NCBI GenBank assembly: GCA_964247055.1
Contig: OZ176050.1
Span: 2,604,001-2,668,000, forward strand
Direction: 5' to 3'
DNA from: Paragordius varius
Lineage: Eukaryota > Animalia > Nematomorpha
Length of the DNA stretch: 64,000 nt
The position numbers and the translations under genes were made by a program. The stretch's first letter is position 1. The number at the start of each line of letters is the position of its first letter. The notes beneath the pieces were generated by a model. The model was not told the DNA's origin, did not search any database, and was given only the letters and a program-made list of their open reading frames with translations. Below, one piece after another: positions 1 through 36,704 of the stretch.

Positions 1-440
1 CATTGCTACACCTTAGAAAATGGCGGAATTTGCGCGCATTTTTGATAAATAAAATTATTTTAGTAAAAGCTAAATGCTTAATTTTAAAATATCATTAAAT
101 TATATTATAAACTACATATAAAAAGCAAAACAATTTAATATTTTAAATTTTGGATGCTGCGAAAGTCCCGATTTTTTAGCCCTTCTAATATGGGCATGTT
201 CTCTTCAAATAAATGCAAAAATGCTGAGATTGCGCAATAAAACTTTTAATATGCTAAATATTCACATTAAAAAAAAGTTTTTTTCCGTAAAAATGGATAT
301 TTTGGTTAAAAATTTAATTTATAGCATTGTTTTAAAGCTTACTTCATCTTATTTGGCATGATAGAAACGGTATAAAAACAGTTTATACCATTTGCACTTT
401 AAGAGTGTCCTTTAACACTTCAAGTTAATCCTTGAACTTT

Positions 441-980
441 TCATGTTGGTTCAGAAAATGATCTTTTTTCCGAAGTATCATTAGTTAAAAAATATATTAA
501 TAATGAAAAACTTAAATTATGGACAACAGAAAAAAAATACAGTAGAAAAGAAATGGCTAGAAATATTTCATCATTTTGAAACAAACTAAGTTCCATACAA
601 AAACATTTTAAAAATTGTGGAAGTTGCACTATCTTTACCTGGAACCAACGCTGCTACTGAACGCGTTTTTTTCCACAGTAATTCAGGTGTGGACATCGGA
701 AAAATCAAAATGTGCAAACTTTAAAGGCCATTTTATCTGTTTGACAAATTCTTGCGAAGACTGCTGCAATATTTTAAAAAATAATGACAATCTGCTAAAA
801 TTCACTCATATAAAAAATATACCAAAGAATAAAATGTTTTTTATATTTATAATGTATTTGTCTTAAAAATATAAGTATTACAATAAATTTTTTGCATAAA
901 AATTTTTGGTTGTAACCCCCCCATTCCCCCCTTTTCTCAAATTTGTCCCGCTTTTTCCTTCATAAAATCTGGTCACCTTA
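441..980 (+). mobile_element. 3' fragment of Blackjack-type hAT transposon (transposase C-terminus plus right TIR), unit 1
   Basis: Encodes the LSLPGTNAATERVF hAT C-terminal motif and ends in tctggtcacctta (968-980). Homologous to 36290-36660 and 37510-37667. Confidence 0.85.
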
Positions 981-1166
981 AGTATTATATATATATATAT
1001 ATATATTAATATTATTTTAGAAATTGACGTTTTATTGATGGTTTAATACGTCATGTTTAAGATTGATATTAACAATCAAAATTATCGTCATATAAAATAA
1101 CTTTTAATTACATAATGTTGTGTTTTTCATAATTTAATAAATAGTACACGCATACACTGATCAATA

Positions 1167-2378
1167 ATGAGTTAATTTGTCTTGCCATAAACCTTTAAAC
1201 CAATGTAGTACTTGTTTAGTACCATTTATCATGGATGAAAAAGATCCAAATCTTGCAACTTTCAATTTTCAACCACAAAATTCTCCATCACCTTTTCAGT
1301 TTAATACAACGAATACACCCCATCCTTACTCAACCGCCGCCTATTTGTCCCCAATTAGCAATTATCAAAACGTAATTAGTACAGCTAACAATGAATCTTC
1401 TCCTAAAACAATTGAAGACACCAGCTCTGACACAGAGAATCTTGTAGATTTTAAAGTTGAAGCAGTAAATGAAAAGGATATTATATCCCAGGAAGACGAT
1501 ACACAAAATAATTCGCAAAATGATGCTAATATTAATTATAACGATACAAAATCACCAGATACTGATAAAGCTGCCTTAATTAATGATACATATAAAAATG
1601 ATTTCTACAACACTGCTGGAATCAGGAAATGGCAAGAAATAATAGCCTATTTTACCATACAAACACTATTAAGCATATGTTTAGACAATTAAATAAATGT
1701 CTTAATAAGTCTACAAATAATTTACCAAATAAAGATCCATACGAAGAAACGGAAGATAATCAATCAGTTAGGGGAGAAAAGAAAGACAAAACGCCAGAAA
1801 TGTATGGACCAAATGACAGTTTTTATATATCCCGTTCGTTTGAGCTTTGGCAAAAGACAAAGCCTAACCCCTGTATATTACAAGGACCAGCCATAAGTAC
1901 ACAACAGAGAAAAAGTAAATAGACGTCCCTTCATTTTGAGGAGAATTTAAGCCAAGAAGCCGAAATTTGCAAACAGTTGGAGGAATATTCGCGACAAGTT
2001 TCGCAAAACTTGGAGTCCATATATGTGATGTATAAAAATGAACGGTATAGAGAACGTCAATTTGAAAAAAAATAGTCCAAAAATTAGTGAAAAAATATAC
2101 AGACCTTGAAGTAGAATCTCTAACTGATCTTGTGGTGGGACCCAATAAAAAAGGTTTCTAATATACATTATTTCATCAATATTGCTTTCATCTCTAAAGA
2201 ATTAAATCATTGATCATTCATAGTAAAACATAAGCTGTTACAGAAAGTAAAAATAATTAAATTTTTAAACATGCTTTTGTCCCTTAAAAGTTTTCATGTA
2301 AATATGGTTAATTTTTAAAATAAAATTTAGAAATGCCGCTTAACAAATTATTTTAAAAATTATGATAAGAATGAATAA
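1167..2378 (+). pseudogene. Orphan gene family member, disrupted copy, unit 1 (putative exons 1167-2153, 2200-2246, 2331-2378)
   Basis: Homologous to the 292-aa and 309-aa ORFs at 17955 and 23034. Deletions after the start give ATG AGT TAA; there is a frameshift near 1690 and further stops at 1920-1922 and near 2073. GT-AG pairs at 2154-2199 and 2247-2330 keep the ancestral frame. Confidence 0.75.
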
Positions 2379-2562
2379 AAGGTATAATTCTCTATGGACG
2401 TCTTATTATTAATAATTCTTAAGCTTAATAAACATTTCTGTTTCCTTTTTAGAACGAAAGCAATCCAAGACCGCTGATACAAACACAAGAATGAAAGTAA
2501 AGGGCAAAGGGAAAAAGTCATTTCAAAAGAAGAAACGAAGCAAGTCGTTGCAAAGCGCAAAC

Positions 2563-3060
2563 TATTAAGTGTATCGTCTTCATGGAATATCACATCCTTT
2601 CCATTTACGGCTTCAGTTTTAAAATCTACAAGATTCTCTATGTCAGCGCTGGTGTCTTCAATTGTTTTAGGAGAAGATGCATTGTTAACTGTACTAATTA
2701 CGTTTTGATAATTGCTAATTGGGGACAAATAGGCGGCGGGTGAGTATGGTTGGGGTGTATTCGTTGTATTTAGTTGAAAAGGTGATGGAAAATTTTGTGG
2801 TTGAAAATTGAAAGTTGCAAGATTTGGATCTTCATCCATCATGAATGGTACTAAACAGGTACTGCATTGGTTAAAAGATTTATGGCAAGTTTGACAAATT
2901 ATAAACTCGTTATTGATCAGTGTATGCGTGTACTATTTATTGAAATATTAAAAAACACAACTTTATGTAATTGAAGGATATTTTTCTATGACGATAATTT
3001 TGATTGTTAATACCAATCTTAAACATGACGTATTTACCAACAATATAACGTCAATTTCTT
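2563..3060 (-). repeat. Inverted copy of the orphan gene 5' half and upstream region (pairs with 1019-1510), unit 1
   Basis: The reverse complement matches 1019-1510 at roughly 90% by eye. Minus ORF 2360-2842 shares its first ~90 aa with the plus-strand gene. The original ATG is mutated to ACG. Confidence 0.92.
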
Positions 3061-3383
3061 GTATATAAAATATGATAAATTAATATTAATATAAATATTG
3101 ATCAATAACCTCGGAATTTTGATTTACGTGGTTCGATATTCGAATATTAATTGAACAAATTATTTTTCAATGTACTTAAATATGTAGGCAAAATAAATAA
3201 AAATTATAGAGCCATAGAAATGTTTATTATCGTATTCTATAAATAAAGTGTATTTAATATTTTAGGGTTTGACTGTCGTTTTTACTATGCTCCGTAATAC
3301 CATACTTTATTAATATTTTATTCAACATTAAATTCTGTTAATAAGTATGCATAATTTTAAAACAATTATTTTGATGATATCAT

Positions 3384-4174
3384 AAGGGGTGGCCAACCTT
3401 TTTTTCCCGCGGGCACGTATAAATATTAAGTAATAAAAGATTTATTTATCACAACATATATATATATATATATCCCTATTTACGTATTGGGGTGACTAAC
3501 ACAGGTCATTACAAAATTAATTCTACAAAAAATAATTATTTTTGGGGAGTTATTTTTATATAGAATCTTAATTTTATCAAAATATATAATAATGATTAAG
3601 AAGATCTCTGGTTACCATAATCAGTGTATAAATACTAAAACTTTTACATTCAATTTATTAAATTTACAATGTATAATTAACTGTACATCTTGCAACGGAT
3701 TTCGGATGATTGAAATAAAAAATGGATCTGTAGCTCTTGGCCAAGAATATAATTTACCAGATTTTATGGATCTCTGCATACCTGGTTTAAAATAATGGAC
3801 ATATGCTTCAAGTTAGCAGTCAAATCGAAAAGAGTGTCACGCCGCAGTTTTAAGTTTAGTTACAAGAAATTGGTGTAGACATACTAATTGATACAGATGA
3901 AAGATGGTTAAGTCAGGCTCAATTTTTAGAATTTTTACTAAAACTATATATAACAGACGAAAGATTATTATATCCACAATTAAAAGATCTTAAATCGCTT
4001 CTTGATAATGCTTTTTGATGTAATATTTCAGAAAAATTGCACACTACAGATCAATTGAAAAACAGTGATTTAAAATTTAATTGACGTAATCTGAAATGTT
4101 GCTTTTATAAATATATCGATAATATAATTAATCATTTTGAGAAAAGATTTTTGTCAATACATAAGCTCAAATAC
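3384..4174 (+). mobile_element. Left part of Charlie/SPIN-type hAT element, truncated (copies at 8984-9774 and 14577-15367)
   Basis: TIR-like aggggtggccaacc. Transposase remnants ATD..MIEIKNGSVAL, PDFMD.CI, RWLS and YPQLKDLKSLLD. Homology to the full copies stops at 4174. Confidence 0.8.
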
Positions 4175-5109
4175 TGTTACATGCGGATTTTCATTGATAT
4201 TGTCATTATATTCGGAAAAGATCAAAAGAATAATTGTGTCCGTGGCATCACGACGCATTAAAACTAAGCCAACAACTTTGGAAAATAATACCACGGGGAT
4301 AATAAGTAATCAAATTGATGCAAATACGGAATATTTCCCTAAAAGTAATGATTATACGCCATTTAACGAAATAATTAATAAGCGAATTCCTCGGTTTACA
4401 TATAGCCCATTAATTACAATGTTATCTACATTGATACCGGTTCCCAACTCTAATGTACGAAACCGGATTTTTATTTACCCAGAAAATAGTACAACAAATA
4501 CTGGACAATCTAAACTTCGACAAAACAAAATCAAATCCAATGATTAATTATCAAATGTAAATCGAGCATTGGTACTTAAGGACACACCTGTTAAAACGCA
4601 TTACATAAACATAACGAATCACAATATTAGAAATATTAGAGTGGATTTACACAGGATAAAGGTGGGCCCTGATTCGAATGTGACAGAACAAAAATTAGTG
4701 GCTAAAGATACATTTGTATCAATCAGTCCTCAAACAAATGCATCATTGTTAAATAAAGCCAATATTATGTACACCACTCCATTGGCATATAATACGCGCA
4801 AAAAATTATACTTTTTCCCGCGTAAATTAAAAAATGGTCAGAAAAATTTCACGAGTCTACCAAAATTCACAGATTACAAAAACTTTAGTTTTGCAACTAT
4901 GTACAAAAAGATGGATAAGTATTCTCTTTTCAAACATATATTTGGTTACAAATCCAATCAAGCAACACCCCTAACTAATATTTTAAAAAAATAATGATAT
5001 GAAAAACAGACTGCATTCAAATTGCTTAATAATACTCAATCGAAAAAAATACTGCAATAATTCCGTGCTCTTGCTTTTTAGTGCTGCTTTTATTATTGTA
5101 TCATTATAA
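4175..5109 (+). pseudogene. Captured coding segment: Asn/Thr-rich reading frame with one in-frame stop and a hydrophobic C-terminal tail (copies 9775-10709 and 15368-16305)
   Basis: ORFs 4137-4547 and 4569-4994 are in the same frame, separated by a single TAA. After a homopolymer shift the sequence reads KKYCNNSVLLLFSAAFIIVSL*. It has many N-x-S/T sequons. Confidence 0.5.
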
Positions 5110-5128
5110 ATATATTGTATAGTTAAAT

Positions 5129-5350
5129 CAAAATATGCACATTGATGTCGGTCAATTTATAATTTTTGGCCAATAGGCAATACACTATCATATGGGTTAA
5201 AAGAACAAACGATTGAAATTACAATTTTTTCCTATCTCACAACAATAAATTTTATTTAGTTATGGACAAAGTTCGTTTTATGTCATACGCCACTGTATTA
5301 CTAATTGGCCAACCATAATAAGATTTGACCAACATTAATGTGCATGTTGT
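5129..5350. mobile_element. Small MITE-like element with ~55-bp imperfect inverted repeats (copies ~10729, ~16325)
   Basis: aatatgcacattgatgtcggtcaa..ttggccaataggcaatac (5132-5183) is the imperfect reverse complement of 5295-5348. Confidence 0.55.
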
Positions 5351-6033
5351 GAATATAATAAATATCATTTGTGTCCTTTAAACTGAATTTTAAACAACCT
5401 GATTATTGGTATAAATCGTGAGAAAGTAAAAAGAATGCTCAACTTAAAAATAATATTGGTATTACACTGCTTCCGAAATCGGGGAGTGTAAAAAATATCC
5501 TGAAATATGTATATTCTGATAGGAAATAGTATTTGGAATATCATAGTGCTTTTGGCATTGGGCTTTACAGGTGATATAAGTAAGTTATTGCCACATTGCT
5601 ACACCTTAGAAAATGGCGGAATTTGCGCGCATTTTTGATAAATAAAATTATTTTAGTAAAAGCTAAATGCTTAATTTTAAAATATCATTAAATTATATTA
5701 TAAACTACATATAAAAAGCAAAACAATTTAATATTTTAAATTTTGGATGCTGCGAAAGTCCCGATTTTTTAGCCCTTCTAATATGGGCATGTTCTCTTCA
5801 AATAAATGCAAAAATGCTGAGATTGCGCAATAAAACTTTTAATATGCTAAATATTCACATTAAAAAAAAGTTTTTTTCCGTAAAAATGGATATTTTGGTT
5901 AAAAATTTAATTTATAGCATTGTTTTAAAGCTTACTTCATCTTATTTGGCATGATAGAAACGGTATAAAAACAGTTTATACCATTTGCACTTTAAGAGTG
6001 TCCTTTAACACTTCAAGTTAATCCTTGAACTTT

Positions 6034-6573
6034 TCATGTTGGTTCAGAAAATGATCTTTTTTCCGAAGTATCATTAGTGAAAAAATATATTAATAATGAA
6101 AAACTTAAATTATGGACAACAGAAAAAAAATACAGTAGAAAAGAAATGGCCAGAAATATTTCATCATTTTGAAACAAACTAAGTTCCATACAAAAACATT
6201 TTAAAAATTGTGGAAGTTGCACTATCTTTACCTGGAACCAACGCTGCTACTGAACGCGTTTTTTTCCACAGTAATTCAGGTGTGGACATCGGAAAAATCA
6301 AAATGTGCAAACTTTAAAGGCCATTTTATCTGTTTGACAAATTCTTGCGAAGACTGCTGCAATATTTTAAAAAATAATGACAATCTGCTAAAATTCACTC
6401 ATATAAAAAATATACCAAAGAATAAAATGTTTTTTATATTTATAATGTATTTGTCTTAAAAATATAAGTATTACAATAAATTTTTTGCATAAAAATTTTT
6501 GGTTGTAACCCCCCCATTCCCCCCTTTTCTCAAATTTGTCCCGCTTTTTCCTTCATAAAATCTGGTCACCTTA
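6034..6573 (+). mobile_element. 3' fragment of Blackjack-type hAT, unit 2
   Basis: Copy of 441-980 at +5593. Confidence 0.85.
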
Positions 6574-6759
6574 AGTATTATATATATATATATATATATT
6601 AATATTATTTTAGAAATTGACGTTTTATTGATGGTTTAATACGTCATGTTTAAGATTGATATTAACAATCAAAATTATCGTCATATAAAATAACTTTTAA
6701 TTACATAATGTTGTGTTTTTCATAATTTAATAAATAGTACACGCATACACTGATCAATA

Positions 6760-7971
6760 ATGAGTTAATTTGTCTTGCCATAAACCTTTAAACCAATGTA
6801 GTACTTGTTTAGTACCATTTATCATGGATGAAAAAGATCCAAATCTTGCAACTTTCAATTTTCAACCACAAAATTCTCCATCACCTTTTCAGTTTAATAC
6901 AACGAATACACCCCATCCTTACTCAACCGCCGCCTATTTGTCCCCAATTAGCAATTATCAAAACGTAATTAGTACAGCTAACAATGAATCTTCTCCTAAA
7001 ACAATTGAAGAGACCAGCTCTGACACAGAGAATCTTGTAGATTTTAAAGTTGAAGCAGTAAATGAAAAGGATATTATATCCCAGGAAGACGATACACAAA
7101 ATAATTCGCAAAATGATGCTAATATTAATTATAACGATACAAAATCACCAGATACTGATAAAGCTGCCTTAATTAATGATACATATAAAAATGATTTCTA
7201 CAACACTGCTGGAATCAGGAAATGGCAAGAAATAATAGCCTATTTTACCATACAAACACTATTAAGCATATGTTTAGACAATTAAATAAATGTCTTAATA
7301 AGTCTACAAATAATTTACCAAATAAAGATCCATACGAAGAAACGGAAGATAATCAATCAGTTAGGGGAGAAAAGAAAGACAAAACGCCAGAAATGTATGG
7401 ACCAAATGACAGTTTTTATATATCCCGTTCGTTTGAGCTTTGGCAAAAGACAAAGCCTAACCCCTGTATATTACAAGGACCAGCCATAAGTACACAACAG
7501 AGAAAAAGTAAATAGACGTCCCTTCATTTTGAGGAGAATTTAAGCCAAGAAGCCGAAATTTGCAAACAGTTGGAGGAATATTCGCGACAAGTTTCGCAAA
7601 ACTTGGAGTCCATATATGTGATGTATAAAAATGAACGGTATAGAGAACGTCAATTTGAAAAAAAATAGTCCAAAAATTAGTGAAAAAATATACAGACCTT
7701 GAAGTAGAATCTCTAACTGATCTTGTGGTGGGACCCAATAAAAAAGGTTTCTAATATACATTATTTCATCAATATTGCTTTCATCTCTAAAGAATTAAAT
7801 CATTGATCATTCATAGTAAAACATAAGCTGTTACAGAAAGTAAAAATAATTAAATTTTTAAACATGCTTTTGTCCCTTAAAAGTTTTCATGTAAATATGG
7901 TTAATTTTTAAAATAAAATTTAGAAATGCCGCTTAACAAATTATTTTAAAAATTATGATAAGAATGAATAA
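6760..7971 (+). pseudogene. Orphan gene family member, disrupted copy, unit 2
   Basis: Copy of 1167-2378 at +5593, with the same lesions. Confidence 0.75.
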
Positions 7972-8162
7972 AAGGTATAATTCTCTATGGACGTCTTATT
8001 ATTAATAATTCTTAAGCTTAATAAACATTTCTGTTTCCTTTTTAGAACGAAAGCAATCCAAGACCGCTGATGCAAATTTTAAACACAAGAATGGAAGTAA
8101 AGGGCAAAGGGAAAAAGTCATTTCAAAAGAAGAAACGAAGCAAGTCGTTGCAAAGCGCAAAC

Positions 8163-8660
8163 TATTAAGTGTATCGTCTTCATGGAATATCACATCCTTT
8201 CCATTTACGGCTTCAGTTTTAAAATCTACAAGATTCTCTATGTCAGCGCTGGTGTCTTCAATTGTTTTAGGAGAAGATGCATTGTTAACTGTACTAATTA
8301 CGTTTTGATAATTGCTAATTGGGGACAAATAGGCGGCGGGTGAGTATGGTTGGGGTGTATTCGTTGTATTTAGTTGAAAAGGTGATGGAAAATTTTGTGG
8401 TTGAAAATTGAAAGTTGCAAGATTTGGATCTTCATCCATCATGAATGGTACTAAACAGGTACTGCATTGGTTAAAAGATTTATGGCAAGTTTGACAAATT
8501 ATAAACTCGTTATTGATCAGTGTATGCGTGTACTATTTATTGAAATATTAAAAAACACAACTTTATGTAATTGAAGGATATTTTTCTATGACGATAATTT
8601 TGATTGTTAATACCAATCTTAAACATGACGTATTTACCAACAATATAACGTCAATTTCTT
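8163..8660 (-). repeat. Inverted arm, unit 2
   Basis: Copy of 2563-3060 at +5600; minus ORF 8002-8442. Confidence 0.9.
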
Positions 8661-11633
8661 GTATATAAAATATGATAAATTAATATTAATATAAATATTG
8701 ATCAATAACCTCGGAATTTTGATTTACGTGGTTCGATATTCGAATATTAATTGAACAAATTATTTTTCAATGTACTTAAATATGTAGGCAAAATAAATAA
8801 AAATTATAGAGCCATAGAAATGTTTATTATCGTATTCTATAAATAAAGTGTATTTAATATTTTAGGGTTTGACTGTCGTTTTTACTATGCTCCGTAATAC
8901 CATACTTTATTAATATTTTATTCAACATTAAATTCTGTTAATAAGTATGCATAATTTTAAAACAATTATTTTGATGATATCATAAGGGGTGGCCAACCTT
9001 TTTTTCCCGCGGGCACGTATAAATATTAAGTAATAAAAGATTTATTTATCACAACATATATATATATATATATCCCTATTTACGTATTGGGGTGACTAAC
9101 ACAGGTCATTACAAAATTAATTCTACAAAAAATAATTATTTTTGGGGAGTTATTTTTATATAGAATCTTAATTTTATCAAAATATATAATAATGATTAAG
9201 AAGATCTCTGGTTACCATAATCAGTGTATAAATACTAAAACTTTTACATTCAATTTATTAAATTTACAATGTATAATTAACTGTACATCTTGCAACGGAT
9301 TTCGGATGATTGAAATAAAAAATGGATCTGTAGCTCTTGGCCAAGAATATAATTTACCAGATTTTATGGATCTCTGCATACCTGGTTTAAAATAATGGAC
9401 ATATGCTTCAAGTTAGCAGTCAAATCGAAAAGAGTGTCACGCCGCAGTTTTAAGTTTAGTTACAAGAAATTGGTGTAGACATACTAATTGATACAGATGA
9501 AAGATGGTTAAGTCAGGCTCAATTTTTAGAATTTTTACTAAAACTATATATAACAGACGAAAGATTATTATATCCACAATTAAAAGATCTTAAATCGCTT
9601 CTTGATAATGCTTTTTGATGTAATATTTCAGAAAAATTGCACACTACAGATCAATTGAAAAACAGTGATTTAAAATTTAATTGACGTAATCTGAAATGTT
9701 GCTTTTATAAATATATCGATAATATAATTAATCATTTTGAGAAAAGATTTTTGTCAATACATAAGCTCAAATACTGTTACATGCGGATTTTCATTGATAT
9801 TGTCATTATATTCGGAAAAGATCAAAAGAATAATTGTGTCCGTGGCATCACGACGCATTAAAACTAAGCCAACAACTTTGGAAAATAATACCACGGGGAT
9901 AATAAGTAATCAAATTGATGCAAATACGGAATATTTCCCTAAAAGTAATGATTATACGCCATTTAACGAAATAATTAATAAGCGAATTCCTCGGTTTACA
10001 TATAGCCCATTAATTACAATGTTATCTACATTGATACCGGTTCCCAACTCTAATGTACGAAACCGGATTTTTATTTACCCAGAAAATAGTACAACAAATA
10101 CTGGACAATCTAAACTTCGACAAAACAAAATCAAATCCAATGATTAATTATCAAATGTAAATCGAGCATTGGTACTTAAGGACACACCTGTTAAAACGCA
10201 TTACATAAACATAACGAATCACAATATTAGAAATATTAGAGTGGATTTACACAGGATAAAGGTGGGCCCTGATTCGAATGTGACAGAACAAAAATTAGTG
10301 GCTAAAGATACATTTGTATCAATCAGTCCTCAAACAAATGCATCATTGTTAAATAAAGCCAATATTATGTACACCACTCCATTGGCATATAATACGCGCA
10401 AAAAATTATACTTTTTCCCGCGTAAATTAAAAAATGGTCAGAAAAATTTCACGAGTCTACCAAAATTCACAGATTACAAAAACTTTAGTTTTGCAACTAT
10501 GTACAAAAAGATGGATAAGTATTCTCTTTTCAAACATATATTTGGTTACAAATCCAATCAAGCAACACCCCTAACTAATATTTTAAAAAAATAATGATAT
10601 GAAAAACAGACTGCATTCAAATTGCTTAATAATACTCAATCGAAAAAAATACTGCAATAATTCCGTGCTCTTGCTTTTTAGTGCTGCTTTTATTATTGTA
10701 TCATTATAAATATATTGTATAGTTAAATCAAAATATGCACATTGATGTCGGTCAATTTATAATTTTTGGCCAATAGGCAATACACTATCATATGGGTTAA
10801 AAGAACAAACGATTGAAATTACAATTTTTTCCTATCTCACAACAATAAATTTTATTTAGTTATGGACAAAGTTCGTTTTATGTCATACGCCACTGTATTA
10901 CTAATTGGCCAACCATAATAAGATTTGACCAACATTAATGTGCATGTTGTGAATATAATAAATATCATTTGTGTCCTTTAAACTGAATTTTAAACAACCT
11001 GATTATTGGTATAAATCGTGAGAAAGTAAAAAGAATGCTCAACTTAAAAATAATATTGGTATTACACTGCTTCCGAAATCGGGGAGTGTAAAAAATATCC
11101 TGAAATATGTATATTCTGATAGGAAATAGTATTTGGAATATCATAGTGCTTTTGGCATTGGGCTTTACAGGTGATATAAGTAAGTTATTGCCACATTGCT
11201 ACACCTTAGAAAATGGCGGAATTTGCGCGCATTTTTGATAAATAAAATTATTTTAGTAAAAGCTAAATGCTTAATTTTAAAATATCATTAAATTATATTA
11301 TAAACTACATATAAAAAGCAAAACAATTTAATATTTTAAATTTTGGATGCTGCGAAAGTCCCGATTTTTTAGCCCTTCTAATATGGGCATGTTCTCTTCA
11401 AATAAATGCAAAAATGCTGAGATTGCGCAATAAAACTTTTAATATGCTAAATATTCACATTAAAAAAAAGTTTTTTTCCGTAAAAATGGATATTTTGGTT
11501 AAAAATTTAATTTATAGCATTGTTTTAAAGCTTACTTCATCTTATTTGGCATGATAGAAACGGTATAAAAACAGTTTATACCATTTGCACTTTAAGAGTG
11601 TCCTTTAACACTTCAAGTTAATCCTTGAACTTT

Positions 11634-12173
11634 TCATGTTGGTTCAGAAAATGATCTTTTTTCCGAAGTATCATTAGTGAAAAAATATATTAATAATGAA
11701 AAACTTAAATTATGGACAACAGAAAAAAAATACAGTAGAAAAGAAATGGCCAGAAATATTTCATCATTTTGAAACAAACTAAGTTCCATACAAAAACATT
11801 TTAAAAATTGTGGAAGTTGCACTATCTTTACCTGGAACCAACGCTGCTACTGAACGCGTTTTTTTCCACAGTAATTCAGGTGTGGACATCGGAAAAATCA
11901 AAATGTGCAAACTTTAAAGGCCATTTTATCTGTTTGACAAATTCTTGCGAAGACTGCTGCAATATTTTAAAAAATAATGACAATCTGCTAAAATTCACTC
12001 ATATAAAAAATATACCAAAGAATAAAATGTTTTTTATATTTATAATGTATTTGTCTTAAAAATATAAGTATTACAATAAATTTTTTGCATAAAAATTTTT
12101 GGTTGTAACCCCCCCATTCCCCCCTTTTCTCAAATTTGTCCCGCTTTTTCCTTCATAAAATCTGGTCACCTTA
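11634..12173 (+). mobile_element. 3' fragment of Blackjack-type hAT, unit 3
   Basis: Copy of 441-980 at +11193. Confidence 0.85.
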
Positions 12174-12359
12174 AGTATTATATATATATATATATATATT
12201 AATATTATTTTAGAAATTGACGTTTTATTGATGGTTTAATACGTCATGTTTAAGATTGATATTAACAATCAAAATTATCGTCATATAAAATAACTTTTAA
12301 TTACATAATGTTGTGTTTTTCATAATTTAATAAATAGTACACGCATACACTGATCAATA

Positions 12360-13571
12360 ATGAGTTAATTTGTCTTGCCATAAACCTTTAAACCAATGTA
12401 GTACTTGTTTAGTACCATTTATCATGGATGAAAAAGATCCAAATCTTGCAACTTTCAATTTTCAACCACAAAATTCTCCATCACCTTTTCAGTTTAATAC
12501 AACGAATACACCCCATCCTTACTCAACCGCCGCCTATTTGTCCCCAATTAGCAATTATCAAAACGTAATTAGTACAGCTAACAATGAATCTTCTCCTAAA
12601 ACAATTGAAGAGACCAGCTCTGACACAGAGAATCTTGTAGATTTTAAAGTTGAAGCAGTAAATGAAAAGGATATTATATCCCAGGAAGACGATACACAAA
12701 ATAATTCGCAAAATGATGCTAATATTAATTATAACGATACAAAATCACCAGATACTGATAAAGCTGCCTTAATTAATGATACATATAAAAATGATTTCTA
12801 CAACACTGCTGGAATCAGGAAATGGCAAGAAATAATAGCCTATTTTACCATACAAACACTATTAAGCATATGTTTAGACAATTAAATAAATGTCTTAATA
12901 AGTCTACAAATAATTTACCAAATAAAGATCCATACGAAGAAACGGAAGATAATCAATCAGTTAGGGGAGAAAAGAAAGACAAAACGCCAGAAATGTATGG
13001 ACCAAATGACAGTTTTTATATATCCCGTTCGTTTGAGCTTTGGCAAAAGACAAAGCCTAACCCCTGTATATTACAAGGACCAGCCATAAGTACACAACAG
13101 AGAAAAAGTAAATAGACGTCCCTTCATTTTGAGGAGAATTTAAGCCAAGAAGCCGAAATTTGCAAACAGTTGGAGGAATATTCGCGACAAGTTTCGCAAA
13201 ACTTGGAGTCCATATATGTGATGTATAAAAATGAACGGTATAGAGAACGTCAATTTGAAAAAAAATAGTCCAAAAATTAGTGAAAAAATATACAGACCTT
13301 GAAGTAGAATCTCTAACTGATCTTGTGGTGGGACCCAATAAAAAAGGTTTCTAATATACATTATTTCATCAATATTGCTTTCATCTCTAAAGAATTAAAT
13401 CATTGATCATTCATAGTAAAACATAAGCTGTTACAGAAAGTAAAAATAATTAAATTTTTAAACATGCTTTTGTCCCTTAAAAGTTTTCATGTAAATATGG
13501 TTAATTTTTAAAATAAAATTTAGAAATGCCGCTTAACAAATTATTTTAAAAATTATGATAAGAATGAATAA
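12360..13571 (+). pseudogene. Orphan gene family member, disrupted copy, unit 3
   Basis: Copy of 1167-2378 at +11193, with the same lesions. Confidence 0.75.
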
Positions 13572-13755
13572 AAGGTATAATTCTCTATGGACGTCTTATT
13601 ATTAATAATTCTTAAGCTTAATAAACATTTCTGTTTCCTTTTTAGAACGAAAGCAATCCAAGACCGCTGATACAAACACAAGAATGAAAGTAAAGGGCAA
13701 AGGGAAAAAGTCATTTCAAAAGAAGAAACGAAGCAAGTCGTTGCAAAGCGCAAAC

Positions 13756-14253
13756 TATTAAGTGTATCGTCTTCATGGAATATCACATCCTTTCCATTTA
13801 CGGCTTCAGTTTTAAAATCTACAAGATTCTCTATGTCAGCGCTGGTGTCTTCAATTGTTTTAGGAGAAGATGCATTGTTAACTGTACTAATTACGTTTTG
13901 ATAATTGCTAATTGGGGACAAATAGGCGGCGGGTGAGTATGGTTGGGGTGTATTCGTTGTATTTAGTTGAAAAGGTGATGGAAAATTTTGTGGTTGAAAA
14001 TTGAAAGTTGCAAGATTTGGATCTTCATCCATCATGAATGGTACTAAACAGGTACTGCATTGGTTAAAAGATTTATGGCAAGTTTGACAAATTATAAACT
14101 CGTTATTGATCAGTGTATGCGTGTACTATTTATTGAAATATTAAAAAACACAACTTTATGTAATTGAAGGATATTTTTCTATGACGATAATTTTGATTGT
14201 TAATACCAATCTTAAACATGACGTATTTACCAACAATATAACGTCAATTTCTT
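13756..14253 (-). repeat. Inverted arm, unit 3
   Basis: Copy of 2563-3060 at +11193; minus ORF 13553-14035. Confidence 0.9.
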
Positions 14254-17230
14254 GTATATAAAATATGATAAATTAATATTAATATAAATATTGATCAATA
14301 ACCTCGGAATTTTGATTTACGTGGTTCGATATTCGAATATTAATTGAACAAATTATTTTTCAATGTACTTAAATATGTAGGCAAAATAAATAAAAATTAT
14401 AGAGCCATAGAAATGTTTATTATCGTATTCTATAAATAAAGTGTATTTAATATTTTAGGGTTTGACTGTCGTTTTTACTATGCTCCGTAATACCATACTT
14501 TATTAATATTTTATTCAACATTAAATTCTGTTAATAAGTATGCATAATTTTAAAACAATTATTTTGATGATATCATAAGGGGTGGCCAACCTTTTTTTCC
14601 CGCGGGCACGTATAAATATTAAGTAATAAAAGATTTATTTATCACAACATATATATATATATATATCCCTATTTACGTATTGGGGTGACTAACACAGGTC
14701 ATTACAAAATTAATTCTACAAAAAATAATTATTTTTGGGGAGTTATTTTTATATAGAATCTTAATTTTATCAAAATATATAATAATGATTAAGAAGATCT
14801 CTGGTTACCATAATCAGTGTATAAATACTAAAACTTTTACATTCAATTTATTAAATTTACAATGTATAATTAACTGTACATCTTGCAACGGATTTCGGAT
14901 GATTGAAATAAAAAATGGATCTGTAGCTCTTGGCCAAGAATATAATTTACCAGATTTTATGGATCTCTGCATACCTGGTTTAAAATAATGGACATATGCT
15001 TCAAGTTAGCAGTCAAATCGAAAAGAGTGTCACGCCGCAGTTTTAAGTTTAGTTACAAGAAATTGGTGTAGACATACTAATTGATACAGATGAAAGATGG
15101 TTAAGTCAGGCTCAATTTTTAGAATTTTTACTAAAACTATATATAACAGACGAAAGATTATTATATCCACAATTAAAAGATCTTAAATCGCTTCTTGATA
15201 ATGCTTTTTGATGTAATATTTCAGAAAAATTGCACACTACAGATCAATTGAAAAACAGTGATTTAAAATTTAATTGACGTAATCTGAAATGTTGCTTTTA
15301 TAAATATATCGATAATATAATTAATCATTTTGAGAAAAGATTTTTGTCAATACATAAGCTCAAATACTGTTACATGCGGATTTTCATTGATATTGTCATT
15401 ATATTCGGAAAAGATCAAAAGAATAATTGTGTCCGTGGCATCACGACGCATTAAAACTAAGCCAACAACTTTGGAAAATAATACCACGGGGATAATAAGT
15501 AATCAAATTGATGCAAATACGGAATATTTCCCTAAAAGTAATGATTATACGCCATTTAACGAAATAATTAATAAGCGAATTCCTCGGTTTACATATAGCC
15601 CATTAATTACAATGTTATCTACATTGATACCGGTTCCCAACTCTAATGTACGAAACCGGATTTTTATTTACCCAGAAAATAGTACAACAAATACTGGACA
15701 ATCTAAACTTCGACAAAACAAAATCAAATCCAATGATTAATTATCAAATGTAAATCGAGCATTGGTACTTAAGGACACACCTGTTAAAACGCATTACATA
15801 AACATAACGAATCACAATATTAGAAATATTAGAGTGGATTTACACAGGATAAAGGTGGGCCCTGATTCGAATGTGACAGAACAAAAATTAGTGGCTAAAG
15901 ATACATTTGTATCAATCAGTCCTCAAACAAATGCATCATTGTTAAATAAAGCCAATATTATGTACACCACTCCATTGGCATATAATACGCGCAAAAAATT
16001 ATACTTTTTCCCGCGTAAATTAAAAAATGGTCAGAAAAATTTCACGAGTCTACCAAAATTCACAGATTACAAAAACTTTAGTTTTGCAACTATGTACAAA
16101 AAGATGGATAAGTATTCTCTTTTCAAACATATATTTGGTTACAAATCCAATCAAGCAACACCCCTAACTAATATTCTATAATAGTAATAATAATAATATG
16201 AAAAACACATTGCATTCAAAGGTTAATAATACTCAATCGAAAAAATACTGCAATAATTCTGTGCTCTTGCTTTTTAGTGCTGCTTTTATTATTGTATCAT
16301 TATAAATATATTGTATAGTTAAATCACAATATTGACATTGATGTCGGTCAATTTACATGATTTTTGGCCAATCGGCAATACACTATCATATGCGTTAAAA
16401 GAACAAACGATTGAAATTACAATTTTTTCCTATCTCACACCAATAAATTTTATTTAATTATGGACAAAGTTTGTTTTAGTCTACTGTATTACTAATTGGC
16501 CAACTATAATGTGATTTGACCAACATAAATGTGCATGATATAATAAATATTATTTGTGTTTAAAACTCAATTTTAATCAACCTGATTATTAGTATAAATT
16601 GTGAGAGAGTAAAAAGATACTATGCTCAATGAAAATAATATTAGTATTACACTGCTTCCGAAATCGGAGAATGTGAAAAATATCCTGAAATATGTATATT
16701 CTGATAGGAAAAAGTATTTGGATTTATCATGGTGCTTTTGGCTTTGGGCCTTACAAGTGATATAAGTAAGTTATTACCACTTTTATACAAACTGCTCCAT
16801 ATGAGAAAATGGCGGAATTTGCGCGCATTTTGATAAATAAAATTATTTTGGTAAAAGCTAAATGCTTAATTTAAAAAAATATCATTAAATTATGTTATAA
16901 ACTACATACAAAAAGCAAAACAATATTTTAAATTTTATATCTTATGTGCGAACCTAATTTTTTTAGCCCTTCTAATATGGCCTAGTACTCTTTAAATAAA
17001 CGCAAAAATGCTGAGCTCAATAAAATTTTAAATATATGCTAAATATTAACATAAAAAAAAGTTTTTTTCCGTAAAAATGGATATTTTGGTTAAAAATTTA
17101 ATATATAGCAAAATTGTTTCAAAGCTTACTTCATCCTATTTGGCGTGATAGAAACGGTATAAAAACAGTTTAAGATATATTATTTGCACTTCAAGAGTGT
17201 CCTTGAACTTCAAGTTAATCCTTGAACTTT

Positions 17231-17774
17231 TCATGTTGGTTCAGAAAATGATCTTTTTTCCGAAGTATCATTAGTTAAAAAATATATTAATAATGAAAAA
17301 CTTAAATTATGGACAACAGAAAAAAAATACAGTAGAAAAGAAATGGCTAGAAATATTTCATCATTTTGAAACAAACTAAGTTCCATACAAAAACATTTTA
17401 AAAATTGTGGAAGTTGCACTATCTTTACCTGGAACCAACGCTGCTACTGAACGCGTTTTTTTCCACAGTAATTCAGGTGTGGACATCGGAAAAATCAAAA
17501 TGTGCAAACTTTAAAGGCCATTTTATCTGTTTGACAAATTCTTGCGAAGACTGCTGCAATATTTTAAAAAATAATGACAATCTGCTAAACGCATTCACTC
17601 AAATAAAAAATATACCAAAGAATAAAATGTTTTTTATATTTATAATGTATTTGTCTTAAAAATATAAGTATTACAATAAATTTTTTGTATAAAAATTTTT
17701 GGTTGTGACCCCCCCCATTCCCCCCTTTTCTCAAATTTGTCCCGCTTTTTCCTTCATAAAATCTGGTCACCCTA
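17231..17774 (+). mobile_element. 3' fragment of Blackjack-type hAT, older unit
   Basis: Same fragment, ending in tctggtcacccta (reverse complement of TAGGGTGACCAGA, the Blackjack-type terminus). Confidence 0.85.
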
Positions 17775-17954
17775 AGTATATATATATATATATTAATATT
17801 ATTTTAGAAATTGATGTTTTATTGTTAGTAAATACGTCATGTTTAAGATTGGTATTAACAATCAAAACTATCGGCATATAAAAATATCCTTCAATTACAT
17901 AATGTTGTGTTTTTCAATATTTCAATAAATAGTACACGCATACACTGATCAATA

Positions 17955-18833
17955 ATGAGTTTTATAATTTGTCAAACTTGCCATAAACCCTTTAACCAAT
18001 GCAGTACCTGTTTAGTACCATTTATGATGAATGAAGATCCAAATCTTGCAACTTTCAATTTTCAACCACAAAATGCTCCATCACCTTTTCAACTAAATAC
18101 AACGACACCCCAACCATACTCACCCGCCGCCTATTTATCCCCAACTAGCAACTATCAAAACGCAATTAGTACAATTAACAATGCATCTTCTCCTAAAACA
18201 ATTGATGACACTAGCGCTGATATAGAGAACCTTGGTGATTTTAAAGCTGAAGCAGTAAATGAACAGGATATCATATCCCAGGAAGACGATACACAAAATA
18301 ATTCGCAAAATGATGCTAATATTAATTATAACGATACAAAATCACCAGATACTGATAAAACCGCCTTAACTGATGATACAAGTAAAAATAATTTCTACAC
18401 TGCTGAAATCAGGAAATGGCAAGAGTTAATAGCCTATTTTACCATACAAACATTAATTAGCATATTATTAGACAATTGTGTACAATGTCGAAATAATAAG
18501 TCTACAAAGAATTTACTCAATAAAGATCCATACGAAATTGAAACGGAAGATAATCAATCAGTTAGGGGAGAAAAGAAAGACAAACCGCCACAAATGTATG
18601 GACCAAATGACAGTTTTTATATATACAGACCTAAGCCGTTTGAGCTTTGGCAAAAGACAAAGCCTGGCCCCTGTATATTACAAGGAACCGCCATAACTAC
18701 ACAACAGAGAAAAAGTAAGTTGACGTCCCTTCATTTTGAGGAGATTCTACGCCAAGAATCCGAAATTTGCAAACAGCTAGAGGAATATTCGCGACAAGTT
18801 TTGCAAAGCTTGGAATCCATATATAATCTTTAA
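17955..18833 (+). CDS. Hypothetical protein, 292 aa (CxxC-x6-CxxC N-terminus, N/S/T/D-rich linker, predicted helical C-terminus); probably a prematurely terminated first exon
   Basis: Uninterrupted 292-codon ORF in very AT-rich DNA, conserved with the paralog at 23082. It starts MSFIICQTCHKPFNQCSTC. The stop arises from a 2-nt shortening relative to the unit-1 copy. Confidence 0.7.
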   Translation: MSFIICQTCHKPFNQCSTCLVPFMMNEDPNLATFNFQPQNAPSPFQLNTTTPQPYSPAAYLSPTSNYQNAISTINNASSPKTIDDTSADIENLGDFKAEAVNEQDIISQEDDTQNNSQNDANINYNDTKSPDTDKTALTDDTSKNNFYTAEIRKWQELIAYFTIQTLISILLDNCVQCRNNKSTKNLLNKDPYEIETEDNQSVRGEKKDKPPQMYGPNDSFYIYRPKPFELWQKTKPGPCILQGTAITTQQRKSKLTSLHFEEILRQESEICKQLEEYSRQVLQSLESIYNL

Positions 18834-19372
18834 AAATGAACGGTGTAGAGAACGCCAATTTGAAAAAAATATAGTTCAAAAATTAGTGAAAAAATAAACG
18901 GGGCTCGAAGTAGAATCTCTAACTGATCTTGTGGTGAAACCGAATAAAAAAGGTTTCATACATATAATATACATTGTATCATCAAAATAGTTTTCATCTA
19001 TAAAGAATTAAATCATAGATCATTCATAGTAAAACATAAGCTGTTATAGAAAGTAAAAATAATTAAATTTTTAAACATGCTTTTGTCCCTTAATAATTTT
19101 CATGTATATATGGTTAATTTTTAAAATAAAATTTCGAAATGCCGCTTAACAAATTATTTTAAAAATTATGATAAGAATGAATAAAAGGTATAATTTTCTA
19201 TAGACGTCTTATTATTAATAATTCTTAAGCTTAATAAACATTTCTGTTTCCTTTTTGAACGAAAGCAATCCAAGACCGCTGATGCAAATGTTAAACACAA
19301 GAATGAAAGTAAAGGGCAAAGGGAAAAGGTCATTTCAAAAGAAGAAACGACGCAAGTCGTTGCAAAGCGCAA

Positions 19373-19872
19373 ACTATTATGTGTATCGTTTTCATGGAAT
19401 AACACATCCTTTCCATTTACGGCTTCAGTTTTAGAATCTAAAAGATTCTCTATGTCAGCGCTGGTGTCTTCAATTGTTTTAGGAGAAGATGCATTGTTAA
19501 CTGTACTAATTACGTTTTGATAGTTGCTAGTTGGGGAAAAATTGGCGGTGGTTGGGTAAGGATGGGGTGTATTCGTTGTATTTAGTTGAAAAGGTGATGG
19601 AGAATTTTGTGGTTGAAAATTGAAAGTTGCAAGATTTGGATCTTGGTCCATCATGAATGGTACTAAACAGGTACTGCATTGGTTAAAAGGTTAATGACAA
19701 GTTTGACAAATTATAAAACTCATTATTGATTATTGTGTGAGTTTACAATTTATTGAAATATTGAAAAACACAACATTATGTAATTGAAGGATATTTTTAT
19801 ATGACGATAATTTTGATTGTTAATACCAATCTTAAACGGGACGTATTTAACCATCAATAAACGTCAATTTCT
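19373..19872 (-). pseudogene. Inverted arm of orphan gene, older unit
   Basis: Minus ATG at 19723 is followed by an early TAA (CQTCH*). The ORF resumes at MMDQDP (19166-19654). Confidence 0.8.
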
Positions 19873-20199
19873 TGTATATCAAATATGATAAATTTATGTT
19901 AATATAAATATTGATCAATAACCTCTAAATTGTGATTTACGTGGTTTGATAGTTTTCGAATTTTAATTGAACAAATTATTTTTCAATGTACTTAAATATG
20001 TAGGCAAAATAAATAAAAATTATAGAGCCATAGAAATGTTCTTTATCGTATTCTATAAATATAGTGTATTTAATATTTAAGGTTTAACTATCGTTTTTAC
20101 TAGGCTCCGAAATACCATAGTTTATTAATATTTTATTCAATATTAAATTCTGTTAATAAGTATGCATATTTTTAAAACAATTATTTTGATGATATGTAC

Positions 20200-21588
20200 C
20201 AGGGGTGGCCAACCATTTTTTTCCCGGGGGCAACTTTTTTGGGAGAAAATCTCCAGCGGGCACATATAAATACAAAGTAATAAAAAGATTCATTTATCAT
20301 ATATATATATATATATATATCCCTATTTACGGATTGGGGTGACTAGAACAGGTCATTGCCAAATAAATATTACAAAAAATATTTTTGGGCAGTTATTTTT
20401 ATATAGAATCTTAATTATATCAAAATATATAATAATAATTAAGAAGATATCTGGTTACTTCAATCAGTGTACAAATAGTAAAACATTTATATTCAAATAT
20501 TAATTTATAATGAATAATTAACTGTACATCTAACGGATTTCAGTTGAAGTAAAATATATATTTGTAGCTCTTGACAAGTTCTTTAAAATTTACGAGATTT
20601 TATGGATCACTGCATACCAGGTTTAAAATAATGGAAATATGCTTCAAGATAGTGGTCAAATCGAAAAGAGTGTCGCGCCGCAAATTTTCGGTTTAGTTAA
20701 AAGGAATTGGTGTTGACATAGTTAACTAATTAATACAGATAGAAGATGGTTAAGTCGTGTTGCATTTTTAGAAAGATTAGGAAAATTTTTTTACAACTAT
20801 ATATATTTAACAGACGAAAGATTATTATTTCCACAATTAAAAGATCTAGAATCGCTTCTTGATCTTGCTTTTTGATGCAATCCCTCAAAAAAATTGTACA
20901 TTGCAAATCAATTGAGAAACAGTGATATAAAACATTTTTCTAATTTGACGTAATCTGAAATGTTGCTTTTAAAAATGTCAATGATATTTCCTTTTCTAAT
21001 TGAGATTTTTGTCAATACATACACTCAACATTTCTATGTTTTATTACCGTATGTTGGATTTAAAACTAAAATTCTCTACCATTTTCTTAAAGCTAAATTT
21101 CCAGATTTGGATGTCGAATAAAAACTAATCAGAGATCGTTAGAATTTGGAATGTGATTGAAAATTATCCTGATGTCATATGACTAAATGTGGAACACTCG
21201 ATGTTTCTATAAAAAATATTTAAGAAGAAGATTGAGTATACCAAAATTCAGAAAATTTTTCAAAATTAGATTCATATAAAGTCAGTGGAATTCTAGGCAA
21301 GATTCCAAATGTTTATCAGTTAATCTCTGTTCAATCATATAAGAAAAAGCCCTGCACATAAATATGTGTATCCAAAAAGAATTGAAAAGTGCATCAATTT
21401 GCCAAATATGTGGGTATTCTTTATTTAAGTTAGTTATATATAAATTTGTGTTAACTAGTAATTTTACACAAATTAAAAATAAAAAATTATGTGGAAAAAA
21501 AATTCTATGCAAAAATATTTTTTACATTTTTTCTAAAATTTTCAGATGGTTACGAATTCGACCGCGGTCGACCGTTTTGCCACCCCTG
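20200..21588 (+). mobile_element. Defective Charlie/SPIN-type (GTF2IRD2/ZBED5-like) hAT element
   Basis: caggggtggccaacc ... ttttgccacccctg termini. Flanks atatgtac and tcatatac are a degenerate 8-bp TSD. Degenerate transposase motifs are present. Confidence 0.85.
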
Positions 21589-22148: not shown

Positions 22149-23081
22149 TCCTAAAGTCAAAAGTATTATATAAATGCTAGTAAATTATATCAGAATATAT
22201 TATATATATATATATATATATTATTAAGTTTGTTCACAGTGTAATACATTTATAAAAATGTACAACTTAGAAGCAATAACGTATATTATGATACTGATTT
22301 GAAAAGGCATTTGAGATGTCTCCATACGTAAATAATGATTAACACTTCATAAAACCGACCTGTTACAGGAAATCGTAATGTTGGTTGATATTCCACCACT
22401 TTTAAAACCTATTTTGCATAATTATATACTTAACAATTCCTAATCATGGAATCCAAAATAAAACAGTATAAAATTTTTTATACTCATAAACCAGATGACA
22501 AAAAAATGCAAAAATAAAAAACAATATTTTTGGTTATATTCTGATTTAGAAGTTTATTTTATTAATAAAATATGATTGTTAAGATTTTAATAGTGAGTTT
22601 AGGTTAATTAAAAAAAATCATTTTAATATGGTTTCATTAAACTTTTTGTCTTTTAAGCGTGGTAAAAGAAAAACGCCATTTTTTGGTCTGAAATTATATA
22701 GAAACCCTAACTATATGATTTTAGGCTATATTGAATATATCTCCTAAAATGATAATAAACGATAATATTTCAGTTTTTATCATTATTTGTTGAATTATCA
22801 TATTTCAAAAACCAGGTTGTCAACAAATAAATTTTTTGCGGCAAATGAATACGCTGGTCATAAGCTATCTCATGAAAAAAAATTTTCGAAAATGAACCTC
22901 TTTTTTGCACACAGATATATAAATATTAATATTATTTTAGTAAATTTATTGTTAGTAAATACGTCATGTTAGAGATTGGTTTTAACAATCAAAATTATCG
23001 GCATATAAAAATATCCTTCAATCACATAATGTTGTGTTTTTCAATATTTCAATAAATAGTAAACGCAGATATTGGTCAATA

Positions 23082-23963
23082 ATGAGTTTTATAATTTGTC
23101 AAACTTGTCAAAAACATTTAAACCAATGTAGTACATGTTTAGTACCATTTATGATGGATGAAGATCCGAATCTTGCAACTTTCAATTTTCAACCACAAAA
23201 TTCTCCATCACCTTTTCAGTTTAATACAACGAATACACCCCATCCTTACTCAACCGCCGCCTATTTGTCCCCAACTAGCAACTATCAAAACGTAATTAGT
23301 ACAGTTAACAATGCATCTTCTCCTAAAACAATTGAAGACACCAGCTCTGACACAGAGAATCTTGTAGATTTTAAAGCTGAAGCAGTAAATGAAAAGCATA
23401 TTATATCCCAGGAAGACGATACACAAAATAATTCGCAAAATGATGCTAATATTAATTATAACGATACAAAATCACCAGATACTGATAAAACCGCCTTAAT
23501 TGACGATACAAGTAAAAATATTTTCTACAATACTGCTGAAATCAGAAAATGGCAAGAGATAATAGCCTATTTTACCATACAAACATTAATTAGCATATTA
23601 TTAGACAATTGTGTACAATGTCGAAATAATAAGTCTACAAAGAATTTACTCAATAAAGATCCATACGAAATTGAAACGGAAGATAATCAATCAGTTAGGG
23701 GAGAAAAGAAGGACAAACCGCTACAAATGTATGGACCAAATGACAGTTTTTATATCTACAGACCTAATCCGTTTGAGCTTTGGAAAAAGACAAAACCTGG
23801 CCCCTGTATATTACAAGGAACCGCCATAACTACACAACAGAGAAAAAGTAAATTGACGTCCCTTCATTTTGAGGAGATTTTACGCCAAGAATCCGAAATT
23901 TGCAAACAAGAGGAATATTCGCGACAAGTTTCGCAAAACCTAGAGTCCATATATAATCTTTAA
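23082..23963 (+). CDS. Hypothetical protein, ~293 aa, paralog of 17955-18833
   Basis: ORF 23034-23963; the homologous ATG is at 23082. Indels relative to the 17955 copy preserve frame. The downstream exon region is partly deleted near 24015. Confidence 0.7.
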   Translation: MSFIICQTCQKHLNQCSTCLVPFMMDEDPNLATFNFQPQNSPSPFQFNTTNTPHPYSTAAYLSPTSNYQNVISTVNNASSPKTIEDTSSDTENLVDFKAEAVNEKHIISQEDDTQNNSQNDANINYNDTKSPDTDKTALIDDTSKNIFYNTAEIRKWQEIIAYFTIQTLISILLDNCVQCRNNKSTKNLLNKDPYEIETEDNQSVRGEKKDKPLQMYGPNDSFYIYRPNPFELWKKTKPGPCILQGTAITTQQRKSKLTSLHFEEILRQESEICKQEEYSRQVSQNLESIYNL

Positions 23964-36658: not shown

Positions 36659-36704
36659 AATATATTTCTTATATTTATAAAGTTTTTATGTTAAAAAATA
36701 AACA

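Follow-up and report, generated by a model that had tools for sequence, protein, structure and literature searches.

Hairpin RNA (hpRNA) loci of Drosophila are inverted repeats derived from genes and often occur as tandem clusters, such as the 20 copies of hp-CG4068 and the 13 hairpins of hp-tHMG (PMC10317233). They give rise to Dicer-2-dependent small interfering RNAs (siRNAs) that are fully complementary to their targets, with near-perfect arms in at least one cluster, hp-tHMG (PMC10317233). Co-evolution with the target was reported for older hpRNAs conserved with D. melanogaster (PMC10317233), and Nmy and Tmy are hpRNA suppressors of Dox (PMC10317233, PMC10292708). Inverted gene segments also arise as fold-back inverted duplications, a class described from human germline rearrangements and tumour amplicons, with spacers of 766 bp-70 kb and 2-8 bp of inverted microhomology at the junctions (PMC3907307). 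Here we compared with these systems a 64,000-nucleotide stretch of the genome of the horsehair worm Paragordius varius (G000:C1:2604001-2668000, called the window throughout), in which a decayed gene and an inverted copy of its own 5' part form a module that is repeated in a tandem array. An earlier note on this DNA (the original prediction) had described the layout and proposed an array of a gene plus its RNA suppressor. Our analysis confirmed the observation and supported the interpretation in part. It makes it probable that the module is a structural scar, left by an inverted duplication of the fold-back type in a truncated pseudogene, which belongs to a horsehair-worm-specific family, was amplified twice and has been decaying neutrally.

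The assembly comprises 110.6 Mb in 44 contigs; the window is AT-rich (~28% GC) and the array fills its first 33 kb. A BLAST search of the first unit (unit 1) against the window confirmed that the gene is followed by an inverted copy of its own upstream region and 5' coding part (987-1516 versus 3098-2557). The inverted arms are real and their similarity is far beyond chance: over 546 aligned nt they are 87% identical when gaps are counted and ~91% identical on ungapped columns, in agreement with the ~90% previously judged by eye. The pairing first proposed for 1019-1510 and 2563-3060 was correct and its extent was too short, as the arms reach 987 and 3098. The longest exact run between the arms is 51 nt, and the spacer between them covers 1,049 nt (1517-2565). 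The parts of unit 1 are as follows.

987-1516, plus strand: left arm, with a (TA)n tract, conserved promoter and 5' untranslated region blocks, then the start codon of the family (1167) and the opening ~350 nt of exon 1.
1517-2153, plus strand: first part of the loop, the remaining exon 1, which codes for the core that is conserved in the family protein; homology places the donor at 2154.
2154-2452, plus strand: second part of the loop, a remnant of intron 1 with the acceptor tttcctttttag (2441-2452) at its end.
2453-2565, plus strand: third part of the loop, a 113-nt stub of exon 2, with the breakpoint after ...GCAAACTAT (2565).
2557-3098, minus strand: right arm, an inverted copy of 987-1516 with ACG in place of the start codon (plus-strand CGT, 2908-2910).

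The gene remnant of each unit (unit positions 987-2565, plus strand) precedes the inverted copy. Each arm holds ~180 nt 5' of the start codon, the duplicated upstream region that had been noticed before, together with ~350 nt of coding sequence. The acceptor, likewise picked out earlier, proved by alignment to an intact paralogue to be the real intron-1 acceptor of the family, and from it the 113-nt stub runs straight into the inverted arm, where the next triplet after the stub is an in-frame stop (TAA, 2566-2568). Arm and stub overlap at this junction: gcaaactatt (2557-2566) matches the reverse complement of 1507-1516 (gcgaattatt) at 8/10 positions, an overlap that is imperfect after ~10% divergence. 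The (TA)n tract at 987 marks the outer end of both arms and of all homology to the paralogues, and in the left arm it adjoins a dispersed repeat; the tract may have acted as a breakage-prone boundary.

Intact relatives of the gene showed which state is ancestral. A genome-wide search for them with the arm and the paralogue protein, as the original prediction had proposed, found four intact genes on C1 (at 2.04, 2.05, 2.27 and 2.30 Mb), whose proteins are 92-100% identical, and ~13 open copies on C3 (11.59 and 12.0-12.34 Mb), in addition to one pseudogene on C4 and fragments at C1:3.588 Mb. In the intact gene L035, exon 1 has 940 nt (313 codons + 1 nt; the open frame extends to 318 codons), the intron has ~300 nt and exon 2 has ~380 codons, with a donor and an acceptor that preserve the reading frame. 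The exon 2 product has a lysine-rich start, followed by repeated EPIYINQ...PPPLPPRQG motifs, and no signal peptide was evident.

L035:1936-3074 (G000:C1:2275435-2276573): exon 2 of the intact paralogue L035, encoding the C-terminal ~380 residues with tandem EPIYINQ...(Q)PPPLPPRQG.

The intact paralogues are colinear with unit positions 986-2565, have a single arm and continue into the full ~380-codon exon 2. This marks the inverted arm as derived. Of exon 2, 113 nt remain in the array copies, while ~1 kb (~340 codons) with the repeat-rich C-terminal part is gone.

The exon-2 repeats contain YxN, which resembles a Grb2-type SH2 docking site, and PPLPPR, which resembles an SH3 ligand; they could point to proteins similar to signalling adaptors, in a family that expanded in a parasite which manipulates its host. 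Pfam gave nothing significant for the unit open reading frames (ORFs) or the paralogue exons. Exon 2 was run through Pfam only, and the homology searches used the exon 1 product as query. With the intact 318-aa product, a word-indexed search of 5.8 billion proteins returned no match, and a full HMMER profile search of 1.84 billion representatives returned one true relative, an unnamed 667-aa protein of Gordionus (CAK9297721.1, E = 2e-30) with the same CxxC...CxxC motif at its N-terminus, the coiled-coil core at 33% identity and a proline-rich tail. A second HMMER match (P0002) was a low-complexity repeat protein and was set aside. In the Gordionus protein a BACK domain (residues 96-167; Pfam, E = 6e-15) separates the CxxC motif from the conserved core; it is absent from the paralogues here, implying loss or gain of the domain within the family. 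As judged by these matches, the family is nematomorph-restricted and not a strict orphan, so that the lineage restriction implied by the earlier term "orphan gene" stood and the strict sense of the term did not. Eight family genes at G000:C3:11999689-12126690 lie in the order ++++ then ----, with roughly similar spacings; a large mirror-image duplication was considered for this cluster and dropped, as a tree of the 5' segments contained no resolved mirror pairs.

The layout of unit 1 recurs across the array, and the further copies, the tight fold-back and the lone arm reported earlier were all found where they had been placed (units 2-7). The units are ~5.6 kb long and lie head-to-tail with flanks in common, as unequal crossing-over produces. 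Four near-identical young units are present in the assembly. Three of these lie in the window, and the fourth, with one partial unit, lies directly upstream of it (C1:2597040-2604000). Four older, decayed units are 85-89% identical to unit 1 and progressively truncated.

1-5593 (U1), 5594-11193 (U2) and 11194-16779 (U3), plus strand: three young tandem units, pairwise identity 98.6-99.8%.
C1:2598409-2604000: the full young unit upstream of the window.
6580-7109 and 8157-8698: arms of unit 2.
12180-12709 and 13750-14291: arms of unit 3.
16793-21028, plus strand: old unit 4, 88.7% identical to unit 1, with left arm 17778-18306, right arm 19369-19872 and the junction as in unit 1.
22915-25863, plus strand: old unit 5, with left arm 22947-23436, right arm 24294-24842, the unit-1 junction and an internal deletion of unit positions 2087-2287.
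28259-29842, plus strand: old unit 6, the tight fold-back, in which a left-arm piece (28259-28495, unit positions 997-1220) is fused directly to the right arm (28490-29060).
30931-32481, plus strand: old unit 7, a truncated lone right arm (30931-31354) with the downstream segment.
450-985, plus strand: dispersed repeat of ~535 bp that ends exactly at the outer edge of the left arm; also at 36280-36701, 36712-37003 and 37516-37667.
3385-4184, plus strand: second dispersed repeat, ~800 bp, colinear with the right arm in all old units.

The right arm of unit 6 is an inverted copy of unit positions 1019-1596, longer than elsewhere, and its junction is unlike those of the other units. For the repeat at 450-985 there were ~2,900 first-look candidates genome-wide, and 35 scored copies outside the array were 83-86% identical; it ends in a C-rich stretch followed by the (TA)n tract and has the look of a short interspersed nuclear element or a miniature inverted-repeat transposable element. 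For the repeat at 3385-4184 there were 689 first-look candidates, and copies outside the array were 71-79% identical.

Units 1, 4 and 5 have an identical junction between GCAAACTAT and TAAGTGTATCG, and in every unit the right arm continues colinearly into 3099-4170. Because diverged units share the junction and the right arm is colinear with the downstream ~1.1 kb, there was one inversion event before amplification, and the junction has a single origin that precedes the first amplification. The same junction in units that differ by 7-11% also makes an assembly artefact unlikely as the source of the inverted layout. Right arms are 91-94% alike, and the left and right arms of one unit (86-91%) are no more alike than those of different units. 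Site patterns in sets of four sequences gave, per quartet, 12-20 sites that separate left arms from right arms and 0-4 that separate the units, the latter equal to the control class (1-5), so that no co-evolution of the arms within units was detected. These patterns and the arm identities indicate that the arms have neither exchanged sequence nor co-evolved since the inversion. Diverged units do have patches of high identity in common (450-985 at 99.2% in units 1 and 4; the coding part of the left arm at 97.5% in units 1 and 5), which points to conversion between units, not between arms.

We also examined what remains of the coding sequence. Every array copy has frameshifts or stops, as the original prediction of coding-dead units had it, and the array copies are pseudogenes. 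Units 1-3 have two 4-nt deletions right after the family ATG (window 1167) and, further into exon 1, another 4-nt deletion, a 1-nt deletion and in-frame stops, and units 4 and 5 have in common a different 2-nt frameshift. Since none of the frameshifts occurs in every unit, a truncated protein may still have been encoded by the founder. The ratio of nonsynonymous to synonymous substitution rates (dN/dS) was ~1 for left-right and right-right arm pairs, a noisy estimate from 95 arm codons in an N-terminal region that is fast-evolving even among intact genes, and hence weak support; two right arms contain stops. Between units 1 and 4, identity was 90-94% in the arms, 90-97% in the loop and 91-93% in the flanks, and the arms were not better conserved than loop, intron or flanks. 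On the reading that we favor, both arms and the gene body have decayed at a neutral rate since the amplification.

The anatomy of the module resembles the fold-back class in several ways. It has direct and inverted segments around a short unique spacer (here 1,049 nt) and, where spacer and inverted copy meet, an imperfect match that may be the short inverted homology of the class; what lay beyond the break was lost (here the ~1 kb of exon 2), and amplification followed. It differs in that the inverted copy is only ~540 nt long with its second junction at a (TA)n tract, whereas the class consists of chromosome-scale duplications, and in that it is fixed in a germline genome and tandemly re-amplified. 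From this comparison we infer the following repair mechanism. Exon 2 would have broken in one copy of the nematomorph-restricted gene, and repair by fold-back would have let the broken end prime on a short inverted match ~1 kb upstream and copy the 5' end and promoter of the gene backwards; a microhomology-mediated deletion between two convergent paralogues would be an equivalent route. The product would have been a gene cut after 113 nt of exon 2, with an immediate stop and then an inverted arm of promoter plus 5' exon. A first, old tandem wave would account for the units that are now 7-11% diverged and have independent deletions, and a second, recent wave for the four 5.6-kb units with ~99% identity or more. 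If either promoter copy fires, a by-product would be an RNA with an imperfect ~390-bp stem, and convergent transcripts would pair over the loop.

Several points weigh against a mere scar and against simple fold-back. The layout resembles that of known functional hpRNA clusters, which are likewise gene-derived and tandemly amplified (PMC10317233), and selection for dosage could lie behind the young re-amplification, which produced at least four units of ~99% identity. At C1:3.588 Mb the 5' segment of the gene forms another palindrome, a tighter one, and this recurrence needs explaining. The right arm of unit 6 reaches unit position 1596 and would not be produced by a simple fold-back at 1516; fused to left-arm position ~1222, it has to be explained either by an inverted copy that was longer in the ancestor or by recombination between the arms that flipped the loop, with a deletion afterwards. 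This longer copy makes a deletion between convergent paralogues an equally possible origin, and the imperfect microhomology, at ~10% divergence, fits that deletion model equally well. Furthermore, that the module lacks a selected function is deduced from sequence evolution only, a limit that we count against our reading. With these points included, we still favor the structural scar as the probable account of the locus.

Among the alternatives, an hpRNA cluster survives best, although we consider it unlikely. Here a transcript from the left promoter would run through the loop and right arm and fold, Dicer would cut the stem, and Argonaute with the resulting siRNAs would silence members of the family. 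The folding check called for earlier predicted a favorable fold: a hypothetical read-through RNA (1130-2960) folds arm to arm on either strand, with 358/387 arm bases paired and a minimum free energy of -721 kcal/mol, compared to -340 kcal/mol with the right arm shuffled. The arms retain conserved promoter blocks. Leaving aside the AATAAA motifs at 1692, 1728 and 2144 in exon 1, a plus-strand transcript with its intron removed would, from the exon-2 stub onwards, cross the right arm without meeting an AATAAA before 3192. Known hpRNAs derive from their targets, often in tandem clusters of 9-20 copies (PMC10317233), and intact paralogues lie 0.3-0.56 Mb from the array. The assembly contains one Dicer-type locus (Dicer-dimer, C4:9128416) and two Argonaute-family loci, which suggests a small RNA-silencing toolkit.

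G000:C2:3353388-3355921: Piwi-domain locus.
G000:C1:12319268-12327742: Piwi-domain locus.

A genome search for RNA-dependent RNA polymerase gave no match and its controls were likewise silent, making it uninformative; Rfam found no family in window positions 1-34000.

The properties expected of a working stem were not observed. The arms of the units are 87-91% alike, and the two arms of unit 1 have 85/510 21-mers in common, compared to the near-perfect tHMG repeats of D. simulans. Differences between the arms showed no G:U wobble bias (plus/minus-tolerated 11/11, 14/13 and 12/11) and about half were transversions; as above, the arms showed neither co-evolution nor extra conservation. Identity to the nearest intact genes is 82-88%, lower than the high identity expected between a suppressor and its driver. 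Of ~510 arm positions, 0-15 have an exact 21-mer in common with any one of the four intact genes nearest on C1, and for the two C3 genes that were compared the number is zero; siRNAs from the stem would therefore be poor guides against the paralogues. The most source-like units are, in addition, dead and without a native 3' end.

These results separate the array from the systems that it resembles. Like the Drosophila loci hp-CG4068, hp-tHMG and Nmy/Tmy, it has arms from a protein-coding gene of a young, expanding family, tandem amplification, and dead or truncated copies beside intact paralogues. It differs in the imperfect match of its arms, the lack of co-evolution and the scant match to intact genes. 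In comparison to the driver-suppressor arrays Dox/Nmy and Stellate/Su(Ste), the likeness is an amplified young family with intact ORFs (four on C1, ~13 on C3, one Gordionus homologue) and the difference is the 82-88% identity of the arms to the nearest of these. The gene-plus-suppressor proposal was thus upheld in the layout, in the predicted folding of the RNA and in the presence of Dicer and Argonaute loci, while every sequence test for a maintained hairpin or suppressor was negative. We therefore do not class the array as an hpRNA locus, although it may have a weak or past hpRNA-like role. Pseudogene-derived inverted repeats reportedly give endo-siRNAs in mouse oocytes (work attributed to Tam et al. 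and to Watanabe et al., both of 2008). The array has in common with them a dead copy plus an inverted duplicate that could form double-stranded RNA (dsRNA) related to an expressed parent gene, and the resemblance is one of layout only. Mitochondrial coding genes of Nematomorpha are reported to have embedded long inverted repeats, perfect palindromes within functional genes (PMC6649704, PMC10380579). These share with the array the phylum and an overlap of long inverted repeats with coding sequence, and they differ from it in that the array is nuclear, imperfect and located in pseudogenes.

The inverted arm could also act as a promoter, a reading we regard as quite unlikely. The right-arm promoter would fire back into the unit, and the antisense RNA over the loop would interfere with the left copy or pair with sense RNA from the array or the paralogues, yielding loop siRNAs. 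The complete conserved upstream region is present in the right arm, and some of its blocks do not vary even in C3 paralogues with 45% identity, but at ~10% divergence the persistence of promoter blocks carries no information. On the minus strand AATAAA is absent from 2936 to 1031, but this is not significant in A-skewed sequence (~2.5 expected by a rough estimate). The sequence closest to the intact C1 genes is the unpaired loop, not the arms, with 96-200 exact 21-mer positions in common per gene, and only dsRNA over the loop, made by convergent transcription, would match the paralogues well; this similarity is explained, however, by past protein constraint on the conserved core. Moreover, the left copy is already dead, leaving nothing local to regulate.

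The second palindrome (C1:3587736-3589121, L031:4736-6121) contains the same 5' gene segment in arms of ~610 nt that are 92-97% complementary and 148 nt apart. Its internal order is 986-1397 forward and 1605-1411 reversed, followed by the mirror image; it has nested internal inversions and is flanked by ~1-kb direct repeats 2.5 kb apart. Its arms cluster together in the tree, and it is either the result of an independent event or a palindrome homogenised by arm-to-arm conversion. Judged by its arms, it would be a better hairpin candidate than the window units, but its identity to the intact C1 genes is only 77%. That the array, or perhaps more so this palindrome (C1:3587.7-3589.1 kb), is a working or recently retired hairpin/antisense source of small RNAs against the expanding horsehair-worm-specific family with its repeated EPIYxNQ and PPPLPPR motifs seems to us improbable.

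A mobile element, in which the arms would be long terminal inverted repeats of a foldback-type or cut-and-paste transposon with a captured gene fragment and the array a product of its activity, has in its favor symmetric arms with sharp outer ends at 987 and 3098 and dispersed repeats that abut or lie near both sides (450-985, 3385-4184), but we rejected it as highly improbable: the arms are the gene's own promoter and exon 1, Pfam detected neither a transposase nor any other domain in the unit ORFs tested, the copies follow one another head-to-tail and have flanks in common, as from unequal crossing-over, and genome searches with the arm and the family protein found the arm-loop-arm module in the array only, all other copies being ordinary one-armed genes with an intron and a long exon 2, and the C1:3.588 Mb palindrome having different internal junctions.

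Elsewhere in the window, an ORF at 58370-58903 (plus strand) starts inside a Mo25-like domain (Pfam PF08569, E = 5e-12), of which it has the last ~40 residues, and continues into a long Asn/Ser/Pro-rich low-complexity tail. Two overlapping ORFs at 34878-35692 (plus strand; 149 and 139 aa) have no Pfam match, and the first has by eye a Cys/His-rich N-terminus like that of decayed hAT-type transposase relics, a likeness that is unverified. By eye, and likewise unverified, the 102-aa ORF at 55069-55377 (minus strand) looks like the C-terminal tail of a reverse transcriptase of a retrotransposon without long terminal repeats.

On the evidence of sequence evolution, a source of small RNAs appears less likely than a scar, and the two outcomes would have different meanings. 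If small RNAs do arise here, the locus would extend gene-derived hairpin clusters beyond flies and give a handle on RNA silencing in a phylum in which almost nothing is known of it; on the literature covered here, it would be the first hpRNA-type gene-versus-suppressor system described in Nematomorpha. If it is a scar only, it would be a clean natural example of a gene truncated by inverted duplication and then carried along as tandem amplification occurred twice. The locus has also brought to light an expanded gene family, specific to horsehair worms, that previously had no annotation.

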